Shown here: positions 50,001-56,000 of the stretch, in pieces | How the letters are laid out: each line of letters opens with the position of its first letter | How positions within the stretch are numbered: position 1 is the stretch's first letter | NCBI GenBank assembly: GCA_002269645.1 | Contig: NIVC01001610.1 | Span: 62,001 to 126,000 of the forward strand | DNA length: 64,000 nt | Source: Macrostomum lignano | Lineage: Eukaryota | Direction: 5' to 3' | Translations under genes and position numbers: made by a program | The notes under the pieces: generated by a model | The model's database searches: none | Seen by the model: only the letters and a program-made list of their open reading frames with translations | Told to the model about the DNA's origin: nothing

Positions 50001-53000
50001 AGTCGCTCTCAGCCCCAATGTACACGCACCCTTACCAAGCCTCTACAGTCGCTCTCAGCCCCTATGTACACGCACCCTGACCAATCCTCAACAGTCGCTC
50101 TCAGCCCCAATGTACACGCACCCTGACCAATCATCAACAGTCGCTCTCAGCCCCAATGTACACGCACCCTAACCAAGCCCCAATGGCTTACACCAGTTCG
50201 CCCATTTTTTCAAATCTACAGAAAGGCCAACTCAAGAAGTCGGACGTGCCAATCGTGTGGGCGAACTTCGATCCGGCACTGCACGACTGGCTGTTGAAAC
50301 TGACCGAAGCTTTCGACTTGACGTATCCGATGCAGGACGACTGCAACATGGTGCCCTGTCTGCTGCCGGAGGAGACGCCAAGTGTGAGTGTGCAGTCTCC
50401 ATGACAACATGGATGCAAATCTGCATAACATTTCCATTTTCTCTCAGCACTCAAACAATTAATTGGTTCAATCTCCCGATTTCAGTACGTATTTCCGCCT
50501 CCAACTGCTGAGGGCAGCAACTGCAGCCTAGCCAGGTTCATCTACCAGTTCGAGTACCTGCCAGCCGGACTGTTCAACCGAGCCCAAGTGCGCCTGTTCG
50601 AGTTCACAGACAGCGCCACGGTGTGGAAGAGGGGCTCGCTGCTGCGAAAGAACAACCACGAGGCTGTCATCGTGATGGACGAGTGAGCGTCTCGCCTAAT
50701 TTTATCTGCATATTTTTTATGGATTTTCAAAGGTGATTAATTCGAAAATCGAGTCTATAAATCACCACTCTTTTAACTTTAGCAAGCAGCGACTGAGCAT
50801 CTCCGTGTTCGGCCCCAAGCCTGAGAACGTGCTATTCATGATTCGCGACGTTATCGACGGGCTCATCAAGGAGACATTTCAGGGCGTCCACTACGAAGAG
50901 ATTCTACCCTGTCCGGAGTGCCTGAACGCCCCAGGCGCCACTGAGGCTGAGATCAGCCTTATCCGGGTAGCAACCGTGCGCAAGGCCAGCTCACGCCAGG
51001 TGGCCTTCCTCCAGTGCTCGCAGGAGTTTCATATCCTCAATCTCAGTCAGCTGCTCGCGGCTGTGCCCCCGGTTAGCACCGCCGACTTCGACCACCAGCT
51101 GGAGCAGAGCCTGCTGCAGCTGCGTCGCGTGCGTCTGGAGATGACGCGCGACCTTTGCCTGCTGTTCTCGTCGGCTGACTATCCCGATGACCCCGGCAGT
51201 GCCGACGAGATGGCCCGCCTAATCAACCCCGAGATCGTGGTGCAGAAGATGGAGGCCGAGGGGCTGACGTGGTGAGTTTCGAACACAAGCTCAGTTTCCC
51301 TGTCTCAGGCATAATACCAGTGTTCCAGTCTCGGATACAAGCCCAGTTTCCCTGTCTCAGGCATAAGGCCAGTGCTCCAGTCTCGGACACAAGCCCAGTT
51401 TCCCTGTCTCAGGCATAATACCAGTGCTCCAGTCTCGGACACAAGCCCAGTTTCCCTGTCTCAGGCATAAGACCAGTGCTCCAGTCTCGGACACAAGCCC
51501 AGTTTCCCTGTCTCAGGCATAAGACCAGTCTCCAGTCTCGACACAAGCCCAGTTTCCCTGTCTCAGGCGTAAGACCAGTGTTCCAGTCTCGGACACAAGC
51601 CAAGTGCCGCTCGCTACCTCCCGCAGCTATTCAACCGACCAGGACATGCCGGAAGACCGGATGCTGCAAATAAAGGACTGCAAAGTGTTGCTGGTGTTCC
51701 TATCGAAGGCGTTCGCCGATGACGAGGCCTGTCGCGGCATGTTCACCAACGCAAAGAACATCCTTCGCAAGCGAATGATCTTTATCAGCGTCGGCGCTGA
51801 CAAGTCCTGGCGTGACAGCAACGAAGTGGCCTTCCTGGTTGGTACGGACAAGTACATTGACTTCACTGCCAACAAGAAAGACGTCCTGGCGTCAAAGTTC
51901 ACCGAGTTGATCAGCGACGCCAAGGCCGCAGTGGCAACCGCGCGCCAGCCAGAATCGGACCTCCTTGGGAAGGACGTCTTCATCTCCTACTGCTGGGCAA
52001 ACTCGCACGATGCCGCCTCTAAGGGGACGCGGAACAGCGTGTTGGGCTGCCCGGATAGCGATCCTCGGAAAGTGGCCGCCCGCCTACAGGAAAAGGGCAT
52101 CCTCTGCTGGCTGGACGTCAAGGATATCGGCGCTGTAAGACCTGAACAGCTGTCTGTGTGCCCGTCTGTTTTTGGTTTGGTGTTGGATGATGTTGGTTGG
52201 TGTTGGATGGTGTTGGATGGTGTTTGATGGTGTTGGATGGTGTTGGATGGTGTTGGATGGTGTTGGATGGTGTTGGATGGTGTTTGATGGTGTTGGATGG
52301 TGTTGGTTGGTGTTGCATGGTGTTTGATGGTGTTTGATGGTGTTTGATGGTGTTTGATGGTGTTGCATGGTGTTTGATGGTGTTGGGTGGTGTTGGATGG
52401 TGTTGGATGGTGTTGGATGGTGTTGGATGGAGTTGGATGGTGTTGGATGGTGTTGGATGGTGTTGGATGGTGTTGGATGGTGTTTGATGGTGTTGGATGG
52501 TGTTGGATGGTGTTGGATGGTGTTGGGTGGTGTTGGTTGGTGTTGGATGGTGTTTGATGGTGTTGGATGGTTTTTGATGGTGTTGGATGGTGTTGGATGG
52601 TGTTGGGTGGTGTTGGATGGTGTTGGATGGTGTTGGATGGTGTTGGATGGTGTTTGATGGTGTTGGATGGTGTTAGTTGGTGTTGCATGGTGTTTGATGG
52701 TGTTTGATGGTGTTGGATGGTGTTGGATGGTGTTGGGTGGTGTTGGATGGTGTTGGATGGTGTTGGATGGTGTTGCATGGTGTTTGATGGTGTTTGATGG
52801 TGTTGGATGGTGTTGGGTGGTGTTGGTTGGTGTTGGATGGTGTTTGATGGTGTTGGATGGTGTTGGTTGGTGTTGCATGGTGTTTGATGGTGTTGGATGG
52901 TTTTTGATGGTGTTGGATGGTGTTGGATGGTGTTTGATGGTGTTTGATAGTGTTGGATGGTGTTGGATGGTGTTGGATGGTGTTGGGTGGTGTTGGATGG

Positions 53001-56000
53001 TGTTGGATGGTGTTGGATGGTGTTGGGTGGTGTTGGATGGTGTTGGTTGGTGTTGGATGGTGTTGGATGGTGTTTGATGGTGTTGGTTGGTGTTGCATGG
53101 TGTTTGATGGTGTTTGATGGTGTTGGATGGTGTTTGATGGTGTTGGATGGTGTTGGATGGTGTTAGGTGGTGTTGGATGGTGTTGGATGGTGTTGGTTGG
53201 TGTTGGATGGTGTTTGATGGTGTTGGATGGTGTTGGTTGGTGTTGCATGGTGTTTGATGGTGTTTGATGGTGTTGGATGGTGTTGGGTGGTGTTGGATGG
53301 TGTTGGATGGTGTTGGATGGTGTTTGATGGTGTTTGATGGTGTTTGATGGTGTTGGATGGTGTTGGATGGTGTTGGATGGTGTTGGATGGTGTTGGATGG
53401 TGTTGGATGGTGTTGGATGGTGTTGGATGGTGTTGGATGGTGTTGGATGGTGTTTGATGGTGTTTGATGGTGTTGGGTGGTGTTTGATGGTGTTGGATGG
53501 TGTTTGATGGTGTTGGATGGTGTTGGATGGTGTTGGATGGTGTTGGGTGGTGTTTGATGGTGTTTGATGGTGTTTGATGGTGTTTGATGGTGTTGGATGG
53601 TGTTGGATGGTGTTGGATGGTGTTTGATGGTGTTGGATGGTGTTGGTTGGTGTTGCATGGTGTTTGATGGTGTTTGATGGTGTTGGATGGTGTTGGGTGG
53701 TGTTGGATGGTGTTTGATGGTGTTGGATGGTGTTTGATGGTGTTTGATGGTGTTTGATGGTGTTGGATGGTGTTGGATGGTGTTGGATGGTGTTGGATGG
53801 TGTTGGATGGTGTTGGATGGTGTTGGATGGTGTTGGATGGTGTTGGATGGTGTTTGATGGTGTTTGATGGTGTTGGGTGGTGTTTGATGGTGTTGGATGG
53901 TGTTTGATGGTGTTGGATGGTGTTGGATGGTGTTGGATGGTGTTGGGTGGTGTTTGATGGTGTTTGATGGTGTTTGATGGTGTTTGATGGTGTTGGATGG
54001 TGTTGGATGGTGTTGGATGGTGTTTGATGGTGTTTGATGGTGTTTGATGGTGTTGGATGGTGTTGGATGGTGTTGGATGGTGTTGGATGGTGTTGGATGG
54101 TGTTGGATGGTGTTTGATTGTGTTGGATGGTGTTTGATGGTGTTGGATGGTGTTGGATGGTGTTTGATGGTGTTGGATGGTGTTGGATGGTGTTGGATGG
54201 TGTTGGTTGGTGTTGCATGGTGTTTGATGGTGTTTGATGGTGTTTGATGGTGTTGGATGGTGTTGGATGGTGTTGGGTGGTGTTGGATGGTGTTGGATGG
54301 TGTTGGATGGTGTTGGATGGTGTTGGGTGGTGTTGGATGGTGTTGGTTGGTGTTGGATGGTGTTGGGTGGTGTTGGATGGTGTTGGTTGGTATTGCTTGA
54401 CACTAGCTAACGACTCAGAACATCTGCACTCTTTCCCAATCCACCACACTTTACAGCGCAGCCTATTCGAAGACATCAGCGACGGTCTTCGCCAGTGCTC
54501 GGTGGTGCTCGCATTCGCCAGCAACGAGTACCAGCGCAGCGCCAACTGCATGATGGAGTTTCGCTTTGCCTGTCGCAACCTGCGCAAGCCGGTAGTGATG
54601 GCAATCGTTGGCGAGTCGTTGGACTTCAAGACCCAGGAACTCGGCATGCTGAGCATCGGTCTGGACGAGTTCGACTTTCGCCAGCAGGTCAAGGAGTCGC
54701 ACTTCGAGCGGCTGGTCGAACGGTTGAAGAAGCTGCTAGAGGAGCAGAAAAAGAAGAAAAAGGAAGAATTGGAAGAGGCTCGCGGATCAAAGTCCAAGGC
54801 GTCAGCGGCCGCGGCTGCGACGGCAACGAGTTCCGGCCCGCTCACGAGGCGGGGCCTGTTCCGCGAGGAGGCGGAGCTGGCGCAGCGCCGGTTCTTAAAG
54901 CAGTTTCAGCAGCACCACGAAATGCCGCGGCTGCTGGTGCTGGACTTTGCGGATGTGGCCGCCTTTGCTGAGAGCTCGGCCGGCGAGGACAGTGCGGACA
55001 GGCAGCTGGTGAGGCTTTGACGGTTGACGGGAAGGTAGCTTTGATGGGTGATTGACAGGTACACTTAGCTTTGATGGGTGATTGACAGGTACACTCAGCT
55101 TTGATGGATGATTGACAGGTACACTCAGCTTTGATGGATGATTGACAGGTACACTCAGCTTTGATGGGTGATTAGCAGGTACACTCAGCTTTGATGGGTG
55201 ATTGGCAGGTACACTCAGCTTTGATGGGTGATTAGCAGATACAGTCAGCTTTGATGGATGATTAGCAGGTACAGTCAGCTTTGATGGATGATTAGCAGGT
55301 ACAGTCAGCTTTGATGGATGATTAGCAGGTACACTTAGCTTTGATGGCTGATTGACAGGTACACTCAGCTTTGATGGATGATTGACAGGTACACTTAGCT
55401 TTGATGGATGATTAGCAGGTACACTTAGCTTTGATGGCTGATTCACAGGTACACTCAGCTTTGATGGATGATTGACAGGTACACTTAGCTTTGATGGCTG
55501 ATTGACAGGTACACTCAGCTTTGATGGCTGATTGACAGGTACACTCAGCTTTGATGGCTGATTGACAGGTACACTCAGCTTTGATGGATAATTGACAGGT
55601 ACACTTAGCTTTGATGGGTGATTAGCAGGTACAGTCAGCTTTGATGAATGATTAGCAGGTACACTTAGCTTTGATGGGTGATTGGCAGGTACACTCAGCT
55701 TTGATGGGTGATTAGCAGGTACACTCAGCTTTGATGGGTGATTAGCAGGTACAGTCAGCTTTGATGGGTGATTAGCAGGTACACTCAGCTTCGATGGGTG
55801 AGTGGCAAGGCAAGTAGATTCGGAAGGCATTGAGGGTTGATGAAAAAGGCAACTAGCACCGTAAGTTGCTCACCTATTTTACCCCTCACAAATTACCGCA
55901 CTCCAGGATCTGATGAAAGTTCTATGCGAAAATGAGCAGGTGAGCAATAACCAACGTAGACGCATCAACACAGTTCACAGCATGCAGACAGCATTTTGAT

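Follow-up and report, generated by a model that had tools for sequence, protein, structure and literature searches.

Tandem TIR domains behind a Roc-COR module in a Macrostomum lignano ROCO gene differ at the alphaC glutamate, a plausible but unproven GTPase-gated NADase

To our knowledge, few TIR enzymes have been described in animals, namely SARM1 and, very recently, TEP1, and the switches that have so far been found to control TIR enzymes are of two kinds, ARM/SAM modules and STAND ATPases. SARM1/TIR-1 is an animal multidomain protein in which a regulatory module precedes a C-terminal TIR domain with the alphaC glutamate. In plants, RPS4 and RRS1 pair a Glu-bearing TIR with a TIR, that of RRS1, which lacks the catalytic Glu (PMC7282519), and the ROQ1 resistosome arranges four TIRs as a dimer of dimers, where the active site is opened by rearrangement of just two of the four BB loops. 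Roco proteins pass through a COR-dependent monomer/dimer cycle (PMC6337361). Proteins with both ROC/COR and TIR domains were recorded in a study of the Aplysia immunome as 'TLRs with ROC and COR domains', of unknown function and as possible new signalling components (PMC9334734). The gene described here has this combination. It lies within a 64,000-nucleotide stretch of the Macrostomum lignano contig NIVC01001610.1, referred to below as the window, and its two TIR domains (TIR1 and TIR2) fall in the span 51145-54720. The original prediction for this span was that one TIR keeps and the other has lost the glutamate required for cleavage of nicotinamide adenine dinucleotide (NAD+), and that the two form a catalytic plus scaffold pair under Roc-COR control, a GTPase-gated NADase.

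The span consists of three exons of one spliced eukaryotic gene with GT-AG introns. The introns account for ~2.7 kb of its 3.6 kb, and both TIR motifs come into the correct frame only once they are spliced out. In the spliced translation the proposed codons were confirmed: TIR2 has a Glu codon, GAG, within SNEYQRSANCMMEF of alphaC, and TIR1 has a Met codon, ATG, at the corresponding position of SKAFADDEACRGMF (Table 1). The Pfam TIR_2 model (PF13676) matched TIR2 with 55.6 bits and both domains together with 69.7 bits; both TIRs thus match the model, with TIR1 alone reaching 26.5 bits, just below the 28-bit cut-off. When profiles of 28 TIR1 and 30 TIR2 sequences were aligned to each other with hhalign (99.9% probability, E 3.3e-32), ...ACRGMF stood opposite ...NCMMEF residue by residue, with Met on Glu. 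Alignment to PDB chains with HMMER matched the TIR2 Glu with the catalytic Glu in the motifs WCWDEL of Cat1 and WCLDEL of RPP1 and 7xoz. The corresponding residue of the TIR1 profile, a consensus Leu, was aligned to the Glu of WCVRELE in RPS4, which is the best PDB match of that profile; a profile was required here, as searching the PDB with the single TIR1 sequence returned chance matches only. The claimed equivalence of the TIR1 Met and the TIR2 Glu is upheld by both kinds of alignment. An AlphaFold2 model of TIR1-TIR2, made for the ortholog from Lingula and not for the window protein, is consistent with this assignment. It contains two five-strand beta/alpha units (predicted local distance difference test score [pLDDT] 87, predicted template modelling score [pTM] 0.71) and has the Glu in the helix following strand C, as expected of alphaC. 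All Foldseek matches of this model were TIRs.

The difference between the two domains is a property of the family. Across 26 complete members, the window protein included, every TIR2 has Glu in the catalytic column, while the same column of TIR1 holds Leu in eight, Met in six, Ile in six, Val in two, Ala in two, Gln in one and Phe in one, with Glu or Asp in none. In TIR2, 25 columns are conserved at 90% or above, compared with four in TIR1. On average, two members share 43% identity in TIR2 and 27% in TIR1, and in 97% of the 325 pairs TIR2 is the better conserved domain. TIR1 has thus lost the Glu throughout the complete members aligned and drifts freely, and TIR2 has kept a highly constrained residue set that includes the alphaC Glu. 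This pattern agrees with the catalytic/non-catalytic part of the original prediction, in that only TIR2 keeps the alphaC Glu family-wide and that the faster, less constrained evolution of TIR1 fits a non-catalytic partner. Each of the two TIRs has the other as its closest relative, so they arose through an old internal duplication of which the first copy is degenerate. Two ideas about TIR1 were set aside. A concentration of its conserved columns on the DE surface was dropped, since the columns are evenly spread, and a role as BB-loop donor to TIR2 was judged unlikely, the TIR1 BB loop not being conserved.

The TIR pair directly follows what looks like an intact ROCO core. Roc (73.5 bits), COR-A (85.9 bits) and COR-B (104.3 bits) occur in this order, each above its Pfam cut-off, and the translated Roc domain has the G1/P-loop GLGGVGKT, the G3/switch II motif DFAGQ and the G4 motif THSD. 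The complete domain order is an N-terminal region, a Cys-rich region, SPRY, leucine-rich repeats (LRR), Roc, COR-A/COR-B, TIR1, TIR2, a coiled coil, a Cys/His domain and a CaaX box. That part of the original prediction which called for two genuine tandem TIRs behind a Roc-COR module therefore stands; the GTPase-gated NADase that was read from it is plausible on this evidence but unproven.

Compared with the described systems, the protein shares the Roc, COR-A, COR-B core and the preceding LRRs with LRRK2, DAPK1 and CtRoco, but has a TIR pair and a prenylation box where those proteins have a kinase or death-domain output. It resembles RPS4/RRS1 in the pairing of a Glu-bearing with a Glu-less TIR, and the RPS4/RRS1 heterodimer 4c6t was among the top Foldseek matches; RPS4 and RRS1, however, are two proteins with STAND ATPases, whereas here both TIRs lie in one chain behind a Roc-COR GTPase. 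Sensor repeats, an NTPase switch and a TIR effector that acts by induced proximity make up a logic that it would have in common with the ROQ1 and RPP1 resistosomes and with bacterial NTPase-coupled TIR defence. In ROQ1 and RPP1 the switch is a ring-forming STAND ATPase and asymmetry arises on assembly; here the switch would be a Roc-COR dimer/monomer cycle, and the asymmetry is hard-wired by the dead TIR. SARM1 differs in having ARM and SAM domains instead of LRR-Roc-COR, a single TIR, a Trp four residues before the Glu (position -4), the R569/R570 pair and a SARM1-specific loop. Orthology to SARM1 was rejected: the protein has no ARM or SAM domains, and no SARM1 chain was returned at E <=1 in the PDB profile search. 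As a system, the protein would be a new variant of the NTPase-switched TIR effectors.

We put NAD-processing activity of TIR2 at an even chance or somewhat less. In favour of such activity, the best PDB match of the TIR2 profile was Cat1 (E 1.6e-7), followed by the plant TIR 7xoz (~1e-3), annotated as an ADP-ribosyl cyclase and cyclic ADP-ribose (cADPR) hydrolase. The best match in a PADLOC scan was SAVED-TIR, although weak, and the top Foldseek matches of the Lingula model were RUN1, RPS4, RPP1 and TIR-1/SARM1. A BB-loop Gly, which corresponds to the flexible Gly of TIR NADases, is present in the window (LDVKDIGARSLFEDI) and in at least 60% of family members, whose consensus is D.e..g..glf. 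By eye, the segment from strand B through the BB loop to alphaB is similar to that of SARM1, IDVEKLEAGKFEDKL. The invariant TIR2 residues Y165, N169, S170, D209, S237, Y240, S243, E249, G267 and W272 (model numbering) sit in alphaC and just past strands A-D. It is at this edge of the sheet that SARM1 and plant TIRs bind NAD.

Of the alternatives, the one that survives best is that both TIRs are non-enzymatic and that the protein is a GTPase-regulated membrane adaptor or scaffold, which nucleates TIR-TIR complexes in the manner of TLRs and MyD88 and in which the TIR2 Glu is structural or partner-binding. We consider this a serious possibility, if a rather doubtful one. A number of observations speak for it or weigh against an NADase. 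The alphaC Glu is necessary for NADase activity but is not diagnostic of it: more than 70% of all TIRs keep it, as do more than 90% of TLR1/2/6/10, in which its frequency is unlinked to reported enzymatic activity (PMC7075850). No NADase activity has been reported for TLR1/2/6/10, where the Glu is presumably structural or partner-binding. At position -4 to the Glu, TIR2 has Asn and not Trp (Asn in 20, Thr in two, Ala in two, Ser in one and Met in one of the 26 members); Cat1, RPP1 and 7xoz have Trp there in our alignments, and W71 and E75 (numbering of the survey) contact the ligand in SARM1 (PMC7075850). The SARM1 residues R569/R570, which bind the NAD diphosphate, are replaced by Cys-Trp in TIR2 (FISYCW; family FiSYcw.NS), although an invariant Arg later in TIR2, in a DPR motif, could substitute for the pair. 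The alphaC motif of TIR2, SDEYxxSxNCxMEFRFA, is also locally like that of MyD88, SDDYLQSKECDFQTKFAL. MyD88 was found in the same PDB search (E 2e-3), between 7xoz and RPP1 (2.6e-3), and by template modelling score (TM-score) TRR-2 and TLR1 equalled the enzymes in the Foldseek search, so that enzymatic and scaffold TIRs were not separated. A full-text literature search for TIR domain, ROCO and NADase together returned no paper, ROCO-TIR and ecTIR-DC proteins are discussed in comparative immunome papers as adaptors of a possibly novel kind, and the only TIR-type NADases known to be active in mammals are SARM1 and TEP1.

Set against the adaptor explanation is the absence from both TIRs of the Box 2 motif RDxxPG (there is no Pro-Gly BB loop), which marks the TLR, IL-1R, TIRAP and MyD88 groups (PMC7075850). 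In addition, enzymatic TIRs are the best sequence matches of TIR2, and the residues that are invariant in it, all polar or aromatic, seem to be placed at the loop crown around the Glu and not on known adaptor surfaces.

TIR2 might also be catalytic with another substrate or product, such as an NAD-derived second messenger or the synthesis of 2',3'-cyclic nucleotide monophosphates (2',3'-cNMP) from nucleic acids, the altered pocket reflecting a changed specificity. The residues that would line the pocket, W10, N12, S13, D32, P33 and R34 (TIR2 numbering), are nearly invariant yet unlike those of SARM1 and plant TIRs, which points to a ligand site that is conserved but of another kind. Plant TIRs are reported to make 2',3'-cNMP from nucleic acids, and the products of plant and bacterial TIRs are diverse. 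The same conservation, however, could serve protein-protein contacts, and we regard this explanation as improbable.

The C-terminal region bears on whether this copy of the gene is functional. An apparent 1-nt deletion at 58419/58420, within the C run tgcccgag, breaks the frame after KLVWLC and, as assembled, leads to a TGA stop at 58448-58450, which counts against a working protein; the M. lignano relative reads WLCLEHQRAGNGRVTVL across the gap, and relatives have WLC-P/L-EHQ. The gap stems from an indel in the assembly or from a recent mutation that disables the gene, the former being the simplest reading because the frame beyond it stays open, shows clean splicing and runs to a CaaX box. 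That the locus is a decaying pseudogene or mis-assembled, with a motif difference of no present function, is in our view very improbable: the premature stop would remove ~155 residues including the CaaX box, and at a few positions that the family conserves the window TIR2 differs, for instance with Phe for a near-invariant Trp after strand D, but no other disruption was seen in 48211-59216, AG/GT is found at all inferred splice sites, the frame past the gap is not only open but conserved, a C run is a typical site of long-read indels, and Roc-COR and both TIRs are intact.

The Cys/His domain that spans this gap, encoded by exons within 54900-58624, has the motifs LCExExGWH and WLCxxH, which are invariant in the family and may form a zinc site, and its core is confident in the predicted structure; it has no Pfam match and no Foldseek match in the PDB (best E 1.5). 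It is homologous to an unannotated C-terminal extension, the 'X' domain, of cyanobacterial LRR-Roc-COR proteins (P0074, residues 818-992). In bacterial ROCO-TIR proteins (P0100, ~750-915) the domain lies between COR-B and TIR, and the animal TIR pair therefore looks inserted between COR-B and the Cys/His domain. The CaaX box of the window protein, CSVQ, follows a basic stretch, precedes the stop codon and is in frame only if the frameshift at 58419/58420 is an error. About 20 orthologs likewise end in a CaaX box (CVIM, CVII, CSVM, CVLQ), usually after S-K/Q-A/T (P0001, P0003, P0004, P0006, P0007, P0009 and P0012 among them), which implies a conserved, predicted prenyl membrane anchor on a ROCO protein.

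Considering these features together, we tentatively propose, at somewhat less than even confidence, a membrane-tethered intracellular ROCO sensor in which Roc-COR would drive TIR assembly, with TIR2 as the NAD-processing domain and TIR1 as its non-catalytic partner. SPRY and the LRRs would serve in ligand sensing or in keeping the protein in a closed state, and the CaaX box would keep it membrane-bound. The nucleotide state of Roc would shift the COR-mediated monomer/dimer state, and COR-B dimerisation would join two TIR1-TIR2 modules, giving four TIRs, two live and two dead. TIR2 would be the active subunit, its Glu being used for NAD+ cleavage or for an NAD-derived signal. TIR1 may offer a docking surface for the conserved TIR2 BB loop, letting the loop swing out and the active site open; alternatively, it may act as a brake on TIR2 until activation, as RRS1 does on RPS4. 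The label 'scaffold' that TIR1 was originally given is one option, an RRS1-like brake being equally compatible. Direct contact between TIR1 and TIR2 is no more than hinted at by the pTM of the two-domain Lingula model. The broader proposal, that a family of prenyl-anchored ROCO immune sensors is widespread in invertebrates, with spiralians and a hemichordate among the matches, and that in it GTP-controlled COR dimerisation would assemble a hard-wired pseudo-enzyme/enzyme TIR pair with a non-canonical NAD pocket (Asn for Trp, Cys-Trp for Arg-Arg), we consider unlikely as a whole.

If it holds, no earlier TIR enzyme would have been gated by a GTPase, the TIR NADases of animals would gain another class next to SARM1 and TEP1, and the repertoire of NAD-based immune signalling in animals would be broader. 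The protein would also provide a natural single-chain model for the asymmetric TIR pairs of plant resistosomes, and ROCO biology, with its LRRK2-type switch, would gain a new and easily assayed output. If TIR2 is instead inactive, the family would still be a clean case of a conserved TIR Glu with a non-catalytic role.

The closest relative found is BOX15_Mlig008399g1 of the macrostomid flatworm Macrostomum lignano, with 61% identity over 1041 residues; other relatives have ~40% identity across alignments longer than 900 residues. The same order of LRR, Roc, COR-A/B, TIR1, TIR2, C-terminal domain and CaaX is seen in BOX15_Mlig008399g1, in Lingula anatina LOC106160503 and in the Aplysia proteins. 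Proteins with this domain order form a well-populated invertebrate family, found in Lingula, Lineus, the hemichordate Glandiceps, many bivalves and gastropods, annelids, rotifers and Macrostomum, and every member of sufficient length has a TIR1-type followed by a TIR2-type domain. An exhaustive profile search returned 231 cluster representatives at E < 1e-30. The N-terminal accessory domains differ among members, with SPRY here and PLAT, MBT or EF-hand elsewhere; among the ROCO-linked profile matches that were scanned, the N-terminal regions had PLAT, MBT or SPRY. The Lingula LOC106160503, Aplysia and Macrostomum proteins are probably one of the several 'ecTIR-DC' families of Gerdol et al. 2017. 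ROCO-TIR proteins are thus already catalogued but uncharacterised, and the asymmetry of a live and a dead Glu, the conserved CaaX box and the shared C-terminal domain are unmentioned in the ROCO-TIR literature that we found.

TIR2-like domains (E < 1e-45 to the tandem profile) were also seen outside ROCO proteins, beside SPRY or Tudor domains (P0178, P0192, P0210), which makes the TIR2 type a wider class of animal TIR. LRR-Roc-COR proteins with the TIR1/TIR2 tandem and Glu in the second TIR, at ~27-29% identity, were encountered in a cryptophyte data set (P0046 and P0047, from a Hanusia phi transcriptome, and P0045); they reflect either a wider eukaryotic distribution or contamination. Bacterial LRR-Roc-COR-TIR proteins exist as well and carry a W..EE motif. 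Two metagenomic LRR-Roc-COR-TIR_2 proteins of prokaryote type, P0100 and P0109, have a single C-terminal TIR and, within the last ~130 residues, the motif GDWQIEEL or GDWQLEEL. Their TIR keeps the Trp just upstream of the Glu that animal TIR2 is without. Such proteins suggest that Roc-COR-coupled TIR effectors may also exist outside animals.

The gene as a whole is ~30 kb long and encodes ~2,900 residues, with collinear tblastn matches to a Macrostomum lignano protein at ~29.9-59.1 kb; it reaches ~17 kb further upstream than the feature in the original prediction implied. Its coding pattern is one of short GC-rich blocks with AG...GT borders and tandem repeats between them. Because the gene is spliced, a plain listing of open reading frames (ORFs) yields only fragments, and the exon model was assembled by hand (Table 1). 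In the model of 48211-56408, AG/GT is found at every border and the frame is kept throughout, and ortholog tblastn matches coincide with the hand-modelled exon blocks. At the exon end 51271, the split Cys codon TG/C agrees with the ortholog motif G-Y-T-C-W. The ORFs further upstream were joined to the gene solely through tblastn with long relatives, a Pfam scan of the upstream window ORFs having returned no match and missed the SPRY and Cys-rich regions.

Table 1. Coordinates of the ROCO-TIR gene and of its intronic repeats in the window.
Feature	Position	Strand	Evidence or remark
N-terminal exons	29905-45617	+	Collinear tblastn to Macrostomum lignano P0262/P0158; approximate bounds of high-scoring segment pairs (HSPs)
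N-terminal HSPs	29905-30420, 30697-30897, 31850-32473	+	tblastn
Cys-rich stretch	35157-35447	+	tblastn
SPRY region	37556-37675 + 39893-40177	+	tblastn match to SPRY region of relatives P0125/P0144/P0137
Further N-terminal HSPs	40652-41206, 41425-41646, 42379-42732, 44703-45617	+	tblastn
LRR exons	~46238-46576, ~47058-47489	+	Pfam LRR_8/LRR_4/LRR_14; ortholog tblastn; final donor CAG/GTAAAA
Roc GTPase exon	48211-48591	+	Pfam Roc 73.5 bits; AG/GT borders; 75% identity to M. lignano
COR-A and COR-B exons	49440-49874 (COR-A), 50222-50383, 50486-50682 (COR-B)	+	Pfam; AG/GT, frame kept
Exon with COR-B end, linker and TIR1 N-terminal half	50783-51271	+	TIR1 start 51147
TIR1	51147-51948		Broken by intron 51272-51626
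Intron within TIR1	51272-51626	+	52-bp minisatellite 51275-51605
Exon with TIR1 C-terminal half (to 51948), short linker and TIR2 N-terminal half (from 51967)	51627-52134	+	Pfam TIR_2
TIR1 Met codon ATG at catalytic Glu position	51739-51741	+	Within SKAFADDEACRGMF (51703-51744)
TIR2	51967-54753		Broken by intron 52135-54456
Intron within TIR2	52135-54456	+	10-bp minisatellite TGGTGTTGGA, 222 copies, 52178-54395
Exon with TIR2 C-terminal half (to ~54753), Lys/Glu-rich coiled coil and start of C-terminal domain	54457-55008	+	Pfam TIR_2
TIR2 Glu codon GAG	54556-54558	+	Within SNEYQRSANCMMEF (54520-54561); alphaC
Cys/His ('X') domain exons	55907-55939 (predicted mini-exon), 56030-56408, 58348-58624	+	Exon model, family motifs
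Last exon: basic tail, CaaX CSVQ 59202-59213, stop TAA 59214-59216	58953-59216	+	Ortholog comparison
Intron minisatellites	47512-48165, 48627-49035, 49980-50183, 51275-51605, 52178-54395, 55037-55807, 56413-57758, 58651-58942		

The introns have an unusual make-up. Each of those examined in 47490-58952 consists mostly of its own distinct minisatellite, with a period of 10-52 bp and up to 222 copies, the exceptions being the short introns 50384-50485 and 50683-50782, for which no minisatellite was reported. Composition swings widely along the window, with a GC skew of 0.88 at 52-54 kb, and the minisatellites account for this extreme local skew. Further upstream, between the tblastn matches 31850-32473 and 35157-35447, lies an imperfect trinucleotide repeat of ~800 bp (32497-33350), whose minus strand reads as poly-Gln and whose plus strand reads as poly-Leu/Cys/Val.

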